DNA from: Basidiobolus meristosporus CBS 931.73
Taxonomy: Eukaryota > Fungi > Basidiobolomycota
Assembly: GCA_002104905.1 (NCBI GenBank)
Contig: MCFE01000030.1
Location: forward strand, 62,001-126,000
Direction of reading: 5' to 3'
Length of the DNA stretch: 64,000 nucleotides
How positions within the stretch are numbered: the first letter of the stretch is position 1; every line of letters begins with the position of its first letter. The translations under genes and the position numbers were made by a program. Under the pieces are notes generated by a model. It was not told the DNA's origin and did no database searches. It saw nothing but the letters and a program-made list of their open reading frames with translations. Positions 3,736-15,702 of this stretch are shown here, piece by piece.

Positions 3736-5429
3736 TGCAAATACGTGTAAGGTGAGAGCACGTAGTAGGATACAACTTAAATACATCTCCAAGCCATGCT
3801 GCTTGTGCACCTATGGTTTGAAATTGGATAATTTCAAATCACCAATTCCCTACTTCCTGAATGCTGTGTACCATATGTTCTAATCAAGATTGAACCTCGT
3901 ACTTCATCATCTTCAGTTCATCCATACAAGGTAGAGCACAGTGGTTGTATAATGACATTTCTTGATGTGAACATTTCAAAATTATCGTTTTGTGGCAATA
4001 TGGCCATTCATAGAACAATCATTGCCACACTGAGAGACCTGTGTCAATAGGTAACCTTGAAAAAAACCAACTGGTTTGTCTCGAACAATATGAGGTATTT
4101 CGTGACTCCACGTGTTTAGAGGTTACTTCAAAAGCCAGGCTCAATATATTGTGTGTCTCTATAGACATACAGTAGCAAATTCTGTAGAATAGAATGTAAA
4201 CGCCTTGTAAAATGTGGAAAACACCCTTCAAGATGAGCATGGTCAATTGAAATATTCGTTTGACCCTCTTATCATCAAGTTCAGGTATATCCAGGCTTTA
4301 GGTCTACCCACTGTTACTCAATCAGAACACAGCATGCCATTTTCATGGAATTCAAGTTCAGTGTTACATTAAGCAGGCTCTCAGTGGTAGGCCGAACATC
4401 GCATCCTCTTGCTCCGAACAATTCCTAATTGCGATACAACGCCTACAAGTTCATTAAGAAATTATCTCAAGATTGCGATCATCTCTTAGGGAAGTGTGAT
4501 TGCCAAAAATATCTGACCCGATGCTTCTGTTTGTTTGGAGGTCAAAGTGATGGATTCCGACCAATTTATTTTATTGTATTGCAAGAATGGCCTAGTACTA
4601 AAATTTATACATGTATGGCTGAGATCTCAAGCTATCACAAACACTCTCCATGGAGTTTGTCCGAGGACCGATTAGTAAAGATATGAAAAGCAATAATCGG
4701 CGAAGCATTTTATGGGAAACACAATTCTGCGTATAGCATGTGTCTTGCTTTTAATTATATGCCTTGTAGATAACTGGTGATTCTTAATACTTGAATTTTA
4801 TACTTCTATTCGTTTCACGTCATCCGGAATATGGCCAATGATGTATTCTCTACTTTCAACAGGCATCTGGCTGAGTTAGAGGGAACTGCTTTATTAACGG
4901 ATATTCAGGGTGTATTCTTGATGGAGTACTACAAAGGAATATAAGCCATCGACCATATGGCACTCCAATCTCAACATCATTGTACAACCAGCGGTTTCGA
5001 TCAAGGAAATTTGTTAGTATCGTTACTAATTTTAGAGCAAACTCGGCTATAGCCCCACAATCGACCACAATTATAGCATTTTGCGAGACGGCAAGAAAAA
5101 CCTTGGTATAGTGTTGCAATTTAGTCTCTAACTGGTCAGTTCATCTAATGAGGCTGGGGATCTTCCTCGGATACGTAGAAGTCGGAATCATCGCATGTTG
5201 ATCCGCATTAGTGTGACGTTTAAATGTCTGGCGGTAGTTGATAGGGAGGTAACAGTTGTTGGTGGTACTCAACCTGAAAAATGGACGATTCTATTTGCCT
5301 ACGGCATGCACCACTTACATAAATACTTGGAGTCTATCTGACACGAGTTTCACGCTGTATCCCATCTTCCGAAAGATTGGCCATAGTTCCTTGTTGCCAT
5401 TCGAAGCTTTACCTACAGTATCCACAATC

Positions 5430-7066: not shown

Positions 7067-10000
7067 ATGGGAGTTAAAGGCTTATGGGCTTTAATCGAAC
7101 CTGTAGCACGCCCCGTAAGGGTTGAAAGTTTAAGAAACAAGCGACTGGCGATCGATATCCTTTTATTTTCTTTTTGGAGCGTGCATTGTATCAAGGTGGT
7201 GTTGAATATACTTAACTCGAGATTTACATGCAAGTATATGGCTGCATCAATTTCTAAAGGCTATGCGCGATGCGGAGGGGAAAACTTTATCAAACGCGCA
7301 TATTCTTGGCTTCTTTAGGAGAATATGTAAACTGCTGTTTTTTAATATCAAACCTGTGTTTGTGTTTGATGGTGGGGCACCAACTTTAAAGCGCTCAACC
7401 ATCGTAAGTGATCAGACATAGAAGAGGGAATGAACCTCACGTATATTTTACTTATGACCGTTATGTGCGTGTATCTAGAGGGAGCGTAAGGAAAGAAAGG
7501 AGAGGACGACTAAAAATCTGCAGAAAACCGCCGAAAAATTGTTGTCCGCCCAATTAAGACTTCACGCTTTAAATCAGGTCAAAGATAAAGAGATATCACC
7601 TTCCCAGCAGGGGCTTACCAACATAGCCACAGCGGATGCGGGAAGAAGAAAAAGGGACGCGTACGAGCTTCCCGTTGTCGATACCGAATTCAGGTAATTC
7701 GCAATCCCTGTCGCTTTATATAGCTGACTTTAATTCTGTTTGTAAATGTGTCTCCTTTGAGAACAGAATTTCTGTCGAACAGGATAGGATGTTGGCATTA
7801 GAGGAGGGCGAAGATTATGTTATTCATGGAATCGATGTAGGTTTTCCAAGCTTATGCTAAATGGCACATTACATTCTCATACGTATTTCGTCTATTCTAG
7901 ACCGAAAATATTGATTTGGATTCGGAGGTCTTTACCTCTTTGCCCGTTGAAATCCAACAGGAAATCTTGCTTGACTTGAAAAATAAGAGTAGACAAACAT
8001 CCTGGAATCGATTGGAACATATGATTCGCTCTGCTACTATATCCTTTTGTTTTTTCGCGAGACGCGAATGGTCCACCATCACTACCAAATCTGACTTAAC
8101 TCTGTATTTACACCGCCTTTGATTTTTCGCAATTGCAAATCAAGAATCTTGTAAGGCGTAATGATTTGATGCAGCGGTTCTTAGAGTCTACTGGGGCTAC
8201 CAACAGGACATCTACTATAGTGAAAGGGAGAATTGCATCAGAAACCGATCGGGAATACGTATTGATTAGAAACGACGATGTTGCTGGTGGTTGGACAATG
8301 GGAATCAAGTCCAAAAAGCAAGACCCAAATGCTGGAACAAAAGAAACTCCAGTCAAACTGGATAGTTCTGATGAAGATGAAGATTTCGAAGAAGTCGAGA
8401 TCCCAGGGTAAGATATTCTTACGAAAACTGTCTCGCATCCAATTGCTTACCCAGTGCTGTTTGAAACAGTATTACCAAACCTAATTCAGTCAAGCCAACT
8501 GCAGAAGTTCCCTTCTTCAATAGCTCTTTGGAACCTTTACGTAGAACACAGGCCAGTAGCCTGGTGAATGATATGGGCTCTTATGTTGATGACGATGAAA
8601 GTATTGACGCTGTTATGGAAAGATTTAAAAAGCTAGAGGAGGCAACGTTAGTCGAGGGTAAGGAAGTACCCGGGCTCATCCCGTTACCATCAGAAGTGAA
8701 CAACGACTCTTCCAACGAGTGCTCTGAGAAATTGCCAGATCCATCGCTTTTCGTCAGCAAAGAACAAGTTTATGACTATTGGGTGAATCAGGCACCCCCA
8801 GAGTTTAAAGTAAACTTTCCACTGTACGAAATTCTTCTCAAAGAGGCTGTGTATGACTTCAGTGAAGAGGCTAGAAATAGTATTATTCTTTCGTTCACGA
8901 GAAAACTAGAAAAAACCTCAGATGATGGCGTTTCTCGAGACAAGGTTGTTGCGTATTCGTTCTACATAGCGTTTTGTCGATTTGTGAACGAATGGAAGAA
9001 TATATGGGAGCAGATGGTAGAAGAAGTGGATTTATCAGAAGAACCGCAAAGCACCCCGATGGATGACATCAAAACAGTAGCCGCAGTGCAAACCGAGCCA
9101 CAGACCAAAGAAAAGCTGTCAACACCGATTAAAAAGCAAAATTCCGCTGTCGATATTGAGCAGAGTAGTACTAGATTTGCATCTCAATTTGAATCATCCT
9201 ACGAAATCTATTCTTCTGATACGGAGAACAGTCTACAGCTTGAAGAAGAATCATTCAGCCTGCTATCACAGGAAAGCTACTCACTCAAACTAGACGACAT
9301 ATCTACCAAGACACCGAAGGTAGACGAAAACGATCTGGACCAGTTGTGCAATATCGACTTCAGCTCATCGTTCTTACAGCGCGATGCTGAGTTGAGACAA
9401 GAAACCGCTAAAGGCTCATCAAATACTGTAGCTCCGCTTAGAGACGCAAAGGCTGATACGAATGGTCAAAACCCATTTGTGAAAACCTCAAGAATTGCAT
9501 CCAAGTTCTTCAAGTCACCAGTTAATGAAGCCTCGAAATCTACTAGCAGCGATACAGAAATCAAGATCGAATCTGATCCCTACACAGAGAAGCTGCCAAC
9601 CAAGAATGAGTCGAGTATATTAGAGAGTTTGCCAAAGGAAGAGCTTACTGCCGCACGCTCAACTTTTGATGGTTCTACCGAGAGCCTTCAGTCTAGTAAG
9701 CCCAGTAGCCCCAGAATTGACGAAGGTCAAAATACAGCATTACATTCAATCGAGACTATGGATTCACTCAATACAGTATTATCCGCCGTAAAAGGCCGGC
9801 TGGATTCTCAAGAGCCTTTAGAACCTCTACTAAATTCTCCAGTTGGGATCACCGGTGATCTTTCGCCAGTAGTCTCAGCTTCGAACTCTCCGTCCATAAA
9901 GTCATTCTCGAGCCTTGCCAATGCCGACAATGAACTCTCACATTCACCAAAACAGAATGACCATCGAATGGGTAAGAGTGCTATTTCTTGACAGAATAAC

Positions 10001-11838
10001 GAATGAATTACTGACTGCAAGAATCTCCAACAGTGTCCAACGAAGAAACTGCATCCCCGATAGATGTGCAGAATTTGGTGACACCTATTAAGAGGAAGTC
10101 AGACCTGGCTCTTGATCTCACCACTCCAACATTCAGCAGAAGTCAAACTGAGCTTTCGTCCGGTCGATCTGAACAACCACTATATATCTCACCAGAAACG
10201 ATTAAGATTATATCAAGTGGAGGGTTATCAATGAGCAAACACTCACTATTTGATCATAGAAGCCAAGTAGATACATCACCTACGAAGTCTCGTAAGATTG
10301 TGAATGAGCCAGCAGATACGTCACCTACCAAGTCACACAACATCGAGAATGAGCCAGCAGATATGTCACCTACTAAGCCATGCAAGAACGGAAATGAGCC
10401 GGCAGAAACCAGCACTACGGAATTGTTCGATTCGGAAGATGAAGATGTAAGCACGCATCTGGACCAAGAGAATTCGGAATTTGCTCAATTCGTCTCGGCA
10501 TTGAAAAACAAAGACATCGACAGTGTCCATCGAGAATTAGAGAACGAAGTGCAAGAGTTGAATTCCCAAATCAAAAGGGGACAGAGAGATGTTAGCAATC
10601 CCAACAACAATATGATCGCCGATATCCAGGTGAGCGAATTTACGCGACAACTCATTTCAACTCAGTATTGACCAACAGGCAAACCTGTAGGACCTCTTGC
10701 GTCTCTTCGGTATTCCGTATGTAGTGGCACCTATGGAGGCGGAAGCCCAATGTGCAGAATTGCTGAAACTATCATTGGTTGACGGTGTTGTTACTGATGA
10801 TAGTGATGTATTTTTATTCGGAGCCACCAAGATTTATAGGAACATGTTCAATCAGGCCAAATTTGTTGAGTGTTATCAAAGCTCTGATTTGGAAAGAGAA
10901 ATGAAGTTGGATCAAGAGAAGCTTATATCGTTAGCTTACCTTCTGGGTAGCGATTACACTGAGGGTGTCTCAGGAATAGGCGTGGTTAATGCCATGGAGA
11001 TCCTAAACGAATGGTCTGGAGAAGAGGGTCTAGAAAGGTTCAGAGATTGGTGGAAAGATCTGACAAGCATTTCCACGGATTCGCCTGTCAGAAAGAAATT
11101 GGTTCGTAACGAGATCTCGGATTTTACCCTTACTACACGACAACGTTTCTGACCTTTTCTTCCAGCGAAACATTCTGAAGAAATGTTATATTCCGTCCTC
11201 ATTTCCTGATCGTAGAGTCCGAGAAGCCTACATAAATCCCATGGTAGATGACTCGGATCAAAAGTTCCAATGGGGCATACCGGATTTGGACGGACTCCGA
11301 GGGTGAGTCTTAGTTTAATGGAACGATCGCCAATTCACCAAAACCTGACTTCGTTGCTATATCTATATCTGCCCTTCAGATACATGCAGGACAAACTTAG
11401 GTGGCCAGAGTCAAAAACGGATGAAACGCTTATCCCAATAATCAAGAATATCAACCAGAGAAAAGTAGGTGGTTGAACTTGACTGCCGCAGTGGAATGCT
11501 AACAATTGACCTATGTTTAGGTGGAGGGCAACCAAACTACATTGGACGGATTTCTTGGACCGACCCCTGGGCGTACACCAACCCATAAGAGCGCACGTAT
11601 CAGAGATATTGTAAGCCAATGGGTCCAGGGCTCCCAAAATTCGGACACCAACACATCGCCAACGAAACGTGTGTTGGACTCGGATAGTACACCTGATGAA
11701 TCTGAGGAGGAAATGGAGGTTGTCCCTGTAGCAGAGCCACCAAAGACCCGTGGGCGCGGTAGAGGTAAGGGCCGGGGAAGAGGCACTCGTGGAGCAACCA
11801 AAACCAAGAAGGCCTTGACGCGACGAACCAGACAATAG
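7067..11838 (+). CDS. RAD2: XPG/Rad2 structure-specific endonuclease (multi-exon, includes two U12 introns)
   Basis: XPG-N: MGVKGLW...[13 protein letters not shown]...[14 protein letters not shown]-like [20 protein letters not shown]. Long acidic/Ser spacer. XPG-I: [20 protein letters not shown]...[10 protein letters not shown]...[10 protein letters not shown]-terminal QTTLDGF (PIP-like) and a basic RGRG tail. Confidence 0.95.
7155..7227 (+). other. U12-type AT-AC intron (RAD2 intron 1, 73 nt)
   Basis: 5' site ATATCCTTTT, branch TACTTAAC at 7209-7216, 3' end TTTAC. Removal gives G|AT GCA AGT ATA TGG, restoring LAIDASIW. Confidence 0.92.
8039..8111 (+). other. U12-type AT-AC intron (second in RAD2, 73 nt)
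   Basis: 5' site ATATCCTTTT, branch GACTTAAC at 8093-8100, 3' end TTTAC. Removal joins MIRSAT|[13 protein letters not shown] and links ORFs 7916 and 8133 in frame. Confidence 0.92.
10270..10413 (+). repeat. Coding tandem repeat, 45-bp unit x ~3.2, in the RAD2 spacer
   Basis: [15 protein letters not shown] / [15 protein letters not shown] / [15 protein letters not shown] / ETS; units start at 10270, 10315, 10360. Confidence 0.9.
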
Positions 11839-12944: not shown

Positions 12945-14549
12945 TCAGCTCACAACTTCATAGAACAGTGATGCCATCTTATATCGGATGAAGAAAGAGA
13001 CAAGCGAGGCAAGTATCTGAATATATATTACGTATACTACCAACTGACGTTCATTCAATGGCCCTAACTTAACCAGAAGAAGGTTTAAGAGGGTGAAATT
13101 ATTGACTCGGACAGGAATCGCATCATCATTTCGCTCGACTCTGATCAGCCCCAGACCCTCATACATGCAAAGAAATGTCCTTCCCAAGGGCGAAATTTTG
13201 TTGAGCTCAGTATAGGTAGCCTCTAATTTTCCTAGCTGTCGATTCAGCCTTTGACGCAAGAGAAACAGGAGTTGTTGGGCTCAAGTTAATATACTCCGTT
13301 TAATTCCAATATTGGAGAAACTACCTGGGCATACGGTGTCTTGGGCAATCAACAAAATGGAATAGTTGAGGGACAGAGTAGATAAAGTTGAATATCTGCG
13401 GCAGGAAGAAGAGCAGGATAGTTTTTGTGAAATGGCCCATAATTGATACGACCGCCAATGTCATCCCAGCGAAGTAACAATATGTATCACCAACAAAAAC
13501 TCGGGCAGGCCACCTAACAATGTATTAGCATTACTGGCAGAGGTTAGACTGTTATCGGCCATACCAATTATGAAAAAGCAATGCACATGATACTCCAATG
13601 AATGGAAGCAAAAAGTAAAGCGAAATAAGATGCGTCTCTAAGGCTGGGAGGTTTGTTCCATCTAGATATAAGGAGTCGTTGATAACGACGGAGATGGCAA
13701 TAACCAGACTTTGGCCAACTTCAACGCCATTTACACCAGCGAGGATATTGATCGAGTTTGTACAGAATACAGCCAGAAGTGCCATATACAAATAGTAGAA
13801 TATTCCTGGGTTGTTAGATTGTCAATCATGCCATTTTTTCTAATGATACCACAACGATGTTACCAAGATCCAATAGCGGTCCAAACACTCCACGAAGAGG
13901 CAATGGCACCAGCACCGTGGTGACGCCTTCAGAAACATAGTAAACCACCAGCAACGGAATAGACGCCACAGTGGGTAATATGAGCTTGTAACGCCAGCGA
14001 ATATCCAACACATCATCCCCAAAGCCCAACATGACCATACTTTGTATGGTTAGAATGCCGGATAGGAAAGATCCTAGCTGTGAACAGTATACGCATATAC
14101 AGCGATGAATACTGCGTACTAGAAATGCGTAGCATATGCCCACTGACCTTATGATACGGAAACGTATGGAGCGAGAGTTTTTCTCTCTCAGACAAAACAC
14201 CTGGGAACCAGTCAACAAATGGGAAAGGTATAAATATTATCATGGTGATCAGATATATTAAGGCACAGACAACGCCCATGCTTTCAGGTCTATCAGGTAG
14301 GGGATTAGTAAATGACTAAGGCTATACTTGGAATCTTCGATTCTCTTACAGTAACGGTTTGCCTCTTTTGCACATATCCTTTCCTGACAGACCAGCTTTT
14401 AAAAAGGTGGCACTCAAACGAGGAATTAGCTCCCATGTGATTATTCCTGCCAGTACCGACAGACCCAAGGAGGCGTGCAAAGGGTCCTTCGAGGTCCAAG
14501 ATACAAAGCCAATTCCTGCCAGAACAGACAAAGTTCGGGTGGTCAGCAT
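12945..14549 (-). CDS. ALG7: UDP-GlcNAc:dolichyl-phosphate GlcNAc-1-phosphotransferase (GPT/DPAGT1), 6 exons
   Basis: Motifs [73 protein letters not shown] and NNFTLLNL, joined by five GT-AG introns. Confidence 0.95.
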
Positions 14550-14716: not shown

Positions 14717-15702
14717 ATGAGCGTCCCTTTAGCTCTGCCATTCAAGCCTACTGCTGTTAAACTAGCTTTTCAAGGAAGCGGAATCTTTCTTTACAGAAAT
14801 TCACACCTCTATCCTCGGTCAGTATGTAGTTCAAAATTGAACAGCCCTTCACCTTTCTAAAACGTTCTGTAGATATGCTTGGACCAAAGAAGAGCTTCAA
14901 ATCATGATAGAACTGTACGAAGAGCGCGAAAATAATGCAACTGATAGACGTACCGATATTGAGTTATGGAAAGATGGCTCTAAAACGTTGCGAGAAAAAG
15001 GCTTTGACAGAAAGGCATCGCAATGTATTAGTAAATGGAGGAGATTTCGACCTACATATGAGGCTAGTAACTAAATTTGCTGCTTTAACGATTCGCTTGT
15101 TTGCTAATCCTTTTTCACCATAACCTCAGAGAGCAAAAGGGACAGGAACCGAGATTAAGTATCCTTCTGAAAACAAATTAGATTTGCTTGTGGCCCCTCG
15201 AAAGCCCAACGGAAGATCAGGTTCGCGCGAATCAAGCGTAAGAGATCCATCACAACAACGACTTGATCTTCAAAGGAAACAACCGCTGAGGACGAAGGAT
15301 TGTCAGGGCTCACTTGTCTCACCAGCAACAAGTGATCTCTCCCACAAATTAGTTGAGTTGTTGCGTAGTCAACTAGAATTCCAGAATCAAATATATACGA
15401 ATATCGTTGAGGAACTTCGGAAAATTCGTGGGGAAGAGCATCAACTACGAAGTGAGTTTCTTTCCGTACTTAAGGAACTTGACTCCCAAAGTTTAGCATC
15501 AGGCTCACAAAATGCTACACACATGGCCACCAATGGATATCATGATGGGCCTACAGCTAGAACCTCTGTAGATACACCATCCAATGACCCTGATCACTCT
15601 TCAGATCACGGGATTGATGTTTTCGAAGTGGACGAAAATCTCCGCAACTTGCGAGACCATCTCTCTGCCCCGATCACACAAAAGCCTCCGCAGTCTCGCT
15701 GA
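14717..15702 (+). CDS. Trihelix / Myb-SANT-like DNA-binding protein with coiled coil; exons 14717-14817, 14873-15062, 15130-15702
   Basis: YAWTKEELQIMIELY...LWKDGSKTLREKGFDRKASQCISKWRRFRPTYE has the W...W...QC..KW trihelix pattern. Exon phases are consistent; the second intron is modelled as GC-AG. Confidence 0.75.

Follow-up and report, generated by a model that had tools for sequence, protein, structure and literature searches.

Minor introns have been catalogued genome-wide in the fungus Basidiobolus meristosporus, where two surveys counted 249 (0.554%, the highest value in fungi; Larue & Roy 2023, PMC10639083) and 237 of them (Olthof et al. 2024, PMC11347168). According to PMC11347168, several species among the mucoromycotes and zoopagomycotes have genes for U11, U12 and U6atac, and B. 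meristosporus itself has a putative, divergent U4atac. Convincing minor introns were reported neither in Ascomycota nor in Basidiomycota (PMC10639083, PMC11347168), which is in line with the original prediction for the locus studied here, where the minor-spliceosome signals were said to be lost in Dikarya and kept in some early-diverging fungi. In mammals, ERCC5, the XPG gene, is listed in Table 3 of a 2006 study by Sheth et al. (PMC1557818) with a U12 intron of the AT-AT type in human and of the AT-AC type in mouse. This backs the further statement of the original prediction that human ERCC5 has U12 splice sites, the table giving no intron number. ERCC5 is not mentioned in the supplements of PMC7367187, PMC10639083 and PMC2846911, and the XPG gene is not named in the available portions of the text and supplement of PMC10639083 or of the text of PMC11347168.

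We analysed a 64-kb window, that is, the whole stretch of B. meristosporus DNA under study, which carries a RAD2/XPG nucleotide-excision-repair nuclease gene. A 73-nt interruption near the start of this gene, at 7155-7227, is very probably a genuine minor-spliceosome (U12-dependent) AT-AC intron. That it is spliced, and that the minor spliceosome is needed for this, we infer from signals, a homology-defined junction and orthologous introns that were all read directly (Table 1). If it is correctly spliced in the public gene model, this intron may already be among the 237-249 counted in the surveys.

In our own reading of the sequence, the gene consists of 12 coding exons and 11 introns, nine of them GT-AG and two AT-AC. 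The nine GT-AG introns are ordinary (56-77 nt), and the gene is thus otherwise normal, intact and intron-bearing. Pfam places XPG_N over 7067-7403 (exons 1 and 2) and XPG_I over 10697-11152, two nuclease halves set apart by a long spacer as in XPG/Rad2 proteins, which form class I of the FEN1 nuclease superfamily. The spacer amounts to about 3 kb of coding sequence and includes a 487-aa ORF (8528-9991), which had no Pfam match and none in a word search of the protein collection, be it to paralogues, other Basidiobolus or transcripts. The exons were searched one by one. The best matches among solved structures were yeast Rad2 and human XPG, above FEN1: the bit scores of exon 2 were 89 for yeast Rad2, 68-70 for human XPG and 29 for FEN1. 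By these exon 2 scores, the protein belongs with Rad2/XPG rather than with FEN1, EXO1 or GEN1. A word search of the protein collection with exon 2 returned only fragments from other organisms, at 83% identity or less. Two of the GT-AG introns each have two in-frame acceptors (8408-8469 or 8408-8523; 9972-10021 or 9972-10033), the alternatives differing by 18 and 4 codons, respectively; the length of the public model fits acceptors 8469 and 10033.

Read without splicing, the ORF opening at ATG 7067 passes into a wrong frame, encodes unrelated residues and stops at 7318. A second frame, from 7230, gives 58 residues up to a GTAAGT donor at 7404. Exon 1 ends in ...CTGGCGATCG at 7154 and exon 2 starts with ATGCAAGTATATGG at 7228. 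Removing 7155-7227 joins XPG_N profile positions 1-31, carried by exon 1, to positions 33-90, carried by exon 2. The one position lacking between them comes from the split codon G|AT, an Asp aligned with human XPG residue 30. If the two XPG_N pieces are to be joined with a single residue between them, only removal of 7155-7227 will do. This Asp belongs to the seven active-site carboxylates that are conserved in the FEN1 superfamily. The seven carboxylates are mentioned in PMC7321962. Against yeast Rad2, exon 2 aligned end to end from its first residue; against full-length human XPG it aligned with residues 32-88, its own residue 2 corresponding to human residue 32. After excision of 7155-7227, the exon-exon join is predicted to read ...GCGATCG running into ATGCAAGT, and the stretch of residues 25-40 is predicted to include RLAIDASIWLHQ.

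The intron itself reads ATATCCTTTT...TATACTTAACTCGAGATTTAC. Its 5' site, right at the exon border, agrees with the U12 consensus [A/G]TATCCTT at 8/8 positions, and its branch box agrees at 7/8 positions with the consensus TCCTTAAC, the mismatch being an A for C at position 2. From the branch A at 7215 to the last intron base, C 7227, there are 12 nt, where the published optimum for U12 introns is 11-13 nt (PMC3584512). The 3' tail, CTCGAGATTTAC, has no polypyrimidine tract, and the termini, AT (7155-7156) and AC (7226-7227), are compatible with the U12 class. The 5' site, the branch box, the spacing and lack of a tract, and the termini are therefore all as expected of a U12 intron. One ambiguity is built into the sequence: AT follows both borders, so the mRNA cannot separate 7155-7227 (AT-AC) from 7157-7229 (AT-AT); of these two readings, only 7155-7227 fits the U12 consensus. 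All together, the donor, the branch A 12 nt from the end and the AC acceptor of the original prediction were recovered base for base, the restored conserved join that it had pointed out was found again as XPG_N 1-31, Asp and 33-90, and its U12-type AT-AC reading is supported by each of these sequence features and by the orthologous introns described below.

Table 1. Features of the XPG gene in the window, and the state of the first-intron position in homologous loci (for homologous introns: 5' site...branch box, distance of the branch site, terminus)
Feature	Location	Strand	Signals or evidence
RAD2/XPG gene, start codon to stop	7067..11838	+	Pfam domains, solved-structure matches, public model with the same span
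Coding exon 1, 88 nt, 29 residues and the G that opens the Asp codon	7067..7154	+	Pfam XPG_N 1-31, E 6.5e-07
Predicted phase-1 U12-type AT-AC intron, 73 nt	7155..7227	+	Sequence signals, homology-defined junction, orthologous introns
5' splice site ATATCCTTT	7155..7163	+	Exact consensus match; ATATCC invariant in four-fungus alignment
Branch-point box TACTTAAC, branch A at 7215	7209..7216	+	TTAA core invariant in four-fungus alignment
3' terminal AC	7226..7227	+	AC kept in L001, L002, L003, L009
Coding exon 2, AT completing the Asp codon, ends ...APTLKRSTI	7228..7403	+	Pfam XPG_N 33-90, E 3.8e-20
Second predicted U12-type AT-AC intron, same gene, 73 nt, phase 0	8039..8111	+	ATATCCTTTT...GACTTAAC, branch A 12 nt from end
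Zopfochytrium polystomum (chytrid) intron	L001 5927-6007		ATATCCCT...TCCTTAAC, 11 nt, AC
Rhizophagus irregularis intron	L002 3502-3582		ATATCCTTTG...TCTTTAAC...AC
Glomeromycete-like soil metagenome contig intron	L003 2265-2337		ATATCCTTTA...TCCTTAAT, 15 nt, AC
Short AT-rich contig	L009		Only intron 3' end visible, ...AATAC
Oncorhynchus masou ERCC5 homolog intron	L012 10089-10957		GTATCCTTCC...TCCTTGAC, 16 nt, AG; U12-type GT-AG subtype
Eukaryote L006	Same position		U2-type, GTCCGC...GACAG
Animal-like eukaryote L007	Same position		U2-type, GTACGT...TTTTAG
GC-rich eukaryote L008	Same position		U2-type, GTACGG...CGCAG
Pilobolus umbonatus L010	Same position		Intron absent, contiguous ORF
L011, relative	Same position		Intron absent, contiguous ORF

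A composite motif ([AG]TATCCTT, CTTAAC within 400 nt, and a matching terminal pair 10-14 nt past the branch A) has two occurrences in the window, both of which fall within the XPG gene. By chance, 0.12 occurrences are expected per window, and two or more arose in 1/300 Markov simulations. Stronger than the rarity of the motif is its position: it coincides to the base with a junction that was set independently by protein homology. Two further exact [AG]TATCCTTT matches lie on the + strand, GTATCCTTT at 2651-2659 and ATATCCTTT at 14374-14382; as U12 introns they were rejected because a branch box and terminal pair at the right spacing are lacking, and they are probably due to chance or to coding sequence. 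Looser U12 candidates at 15159 (+) and 52130 (-) were not intron-like. A scan of the 64-kb window with Rfam at gathering thresholds returned no minor snRNA gene, a result that is expected at this size and uninformative.

For the comparison with other organisms, a word search with exon 2 gave short gene calls from many eukaryotes, among which loci were chosen with the guidance of their N-terminal contexts. Exons 1 and 2 were then run by tblastn against the chosen loci and the intron sequences were extracted, the vertebrate comparison being made with the salmon orthologue in place of human DNA. Position and phase of the intron are identical in the window, in Zopfochytrium, in Rhizophagus, in the soil metagenome contig and in the salmon (L012 10001-10957 for coding exon 1 and intron), where the coding part of exon 1 is also 88 nt long. 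When the introns of four fungi were aligned, conservation was confined to the exon ends, the ATATCC, the TTAA core and the AC, a pattern that would be expected where the splice signals are functional and the intron is otherwise free to vary. At the same position, U2-type introns were found in three loci, one of which, L006, is probably plant-like (UVH3), and Dikarya-like fragments read as uninterrupted coding sequence. Judged by these signals, the putative U12 state is common to three fungal phyla (including Chytridiomycota and Glomeromycotina) and a teleost, with conversion to the U2 type, subtype switch or loss elsewhere. Because position and phase are shared across fungi and salmon, the intron position must be old. 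The suggestion that it may be ancestral, made in the original prediction, thus gains support at least for the opisthokonts, the salmon intron being of the U12-type GT-AG subtype at the same position and phase.

The intron content of XPG genes varies widely among near relatives. In L011 (Logan SRR26194948; 6001-10376), exon 1 is the closest to that of the window among the loci fetched; its XPG gene has one intron only, at a conserved position after ...KRKTI, and a second exon of 1320 aa.

The other predicted AT-AC intron of the gene, 8039-8111, sits directly 5' of a conserved TAFDFSQLQ motif. The branch boxes of the two AT-AC introns have an ACTTAAC core in common. Rhizophagus also has an AT-AC intron at this second position (L002 4651-4729, ATATCCTTT...TATAC, 79 nt), and there is no intron there in Zopfochytrium, Pilobolus and L011. 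In L008, the intron at the second position (4079-4197) starts with ATATCCGC and ends in AC, with its only CCTTAAC box some 47 nt before the end. This may represent a minor intron that is decaying or atypical.

Could a conventional intron be removed instead, the AT-AC signals being coincidental? We listed every GT-AG, GC-AG and AT-AC pair with which the frame stays open. The original prediction had held that no GT-AG alternative explains the join. For the conserved join this stands, as all alternatives break it, but there are GT-AG or GC-AG pairs that preserve the frame, among them 7115-7259 (with a GTAAGG donor), 7196-7259, 7199-7259 and 7128-7221, and some GT-AG-only combinations over both AT-AC introns also total 1343 aa, the length of the public model. 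Each such pair, however, loses a conserved 10-residue segment and/or the Asp, or adds intron-derived residues, and thereby breaks the contiguous Pfam match (1-31, 33-90). Moreover, four orthologues have U12 signals exactly at the AT-AC borders, and we consider removal of a GT-AG or GC-AG intron at this place very improbable. It is just as hard to credit the major (U2-dependent) spliceosome with excision of the AT-AC intron. U2-dependent AT-AC introns have U2-like sites with a changed first base and are devoid of U12 boxes. They are documented as a rare class (PMC1557818), but the 5' site of 7155-7227 is a perfect ATATCCTT, a TTAAC box lies 12 nt from its end with no pyrimidine tract, and the orthologous salmon intron is a GT-AG form with U12 signals.

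A reading with no intron at all, in which the gene would have become a pseudogene through an insertion of 73 nt or a frameshift, or the interruption would be an assembly error, is less probable still. The remainder of the gene is intact over 12 exons and includes XPG_N, XPG_I and a spacer exon with a long open frame; the 73-nt stretch has full splice signals at borders that are exact by homology; and three further fungal genomes or contigs, as well as a fish, have the same interruption.

We next turn to the public gene models, as the original prediction had held that standard predictors would mis-annotate the nuclease N-terminus at this intron. The public XPG model of B. meristosporus (GCA_002104905.1, MCFE01000030.1) spans exactly 7067-11838, which is about 69067-73838 in the record, and is 1343 aa long. 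With the proposed splicing of both AT-AC introns, I6 at 8408-8469 and I7 at 9972-10033, the exons sum to 1343 aa, a suggestive agreement with correct splicing of both. GT-AG-only pairs such as 7199-7259 with 8071-8155 reach the same total, and the length is therefore not decisive; indeed, a GT-AG-only predictor would still find a path through this region. In two other fungi the models are broken. The XPG gene of Rhizophagus irregularis DAOM 197198w (L002 3618-7668) is annotated as three models of 85, 133 and 812 aa, the breaks being the two AT-AC introns, and the model at the first of these (P0089) begins at MRDKEG. In Zopfochytrium polystomum, the first XPG model (L001 6001-9186; P0033) is a 99-aa 'partial' that starts inside the AT-AC intron. 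Mis-annotation is thus borne out for Rhizophagus and Zopfochytrium, whereas the length of the B. meristosporus model fits both correct splicing and GT-AG-only alternatives.

From what is established of U12 splicing, at 7155-7227 the U11 snRNA would pair with the 5' site and the U12 snRNA with the TACTTAAC box, bulging A 7215; U4atac/U6atac-U5 would then displace U11, with U6atac pairing at the 5' site, and two transesterifications would link the G at 7154 with the AT at 7228-7229, restoring the Asp codon. Any failure of exact excision would shift the frame and end the ORF at 7318. On a broader scale, we lean, if only slightly, towards a scenario in which the U12 intron in the codon of Asp 30 was inherited at least from the opisthokont ancestor, and was kept as AT-AC in three fungal phyla, switched to the GT-AG subtype in fish, became U2-type in plant-like and invertebrate-like lineages, and disappeared from Mucorales and Dikarya. 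As the second AT-AC intron is shared too, fungal XPG would then be a two-minor-intron gene, and minor-spliceosome activity could gate its expression and, through it, nucleotide-excision repair.

Knowledge of minor splicing as such is unchanged by this locus, B. meristosporus having already been reported as the richest fungus in minor introns. What is added is the exact orthology of one of its introns with a vertebrate U12 intron and with introns in two other fungal phyla, together with the broken public XPG models in at least Rhizophagus and Zopfochytrium. The analysis also provides a base-accurate start for the catalytic XPG N-terminus in an early-diverging fungus, and a well-anchored minor intron at a position common to fungi and a vertebrate should be useful for studies of U12 retention, of AT-AC/GT-AG switching and of U12-to-U2 conversion.

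Compared with canonical U12 AT-AC introns of animals and plants (Turunen et al. 2013, PMC3584512), the intron at 7155-7227 is alike in its ATATCCTT 5' site, its TCCTTAAC-like box, the short spacing of 12 nt, the lack of a pyrimidine tract, the AT-AC ends and its location in an 'information-processing' (DNA repair) gene. Unlike them, it has a length of just 73 nt, as is usual for introns in this fungus, and its box reads TACTTAAC. Intron 1 of the salmon ERCC5 gene shares with it the position after 88 coding nt, phase 1 in the Asp codon and the U12 signals, but is of the GT-AG subtype, 869 nt long and with a branch distance of 16 nt. The XPG introns of Rhizophagus and Zopfochytrium are closer, with the same AT-AC ends, position and phase and an overall range of 73-81 nt; Rhizophagus also has the second AT-AC intron, whereas Zopfochytrium is without it and has the 5' site ATATCCCT. 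Last, the minor introns catalogued in B. meristosporus come from the same organism and belong to the same class, of which the intron at 7155-7227 is a further member.
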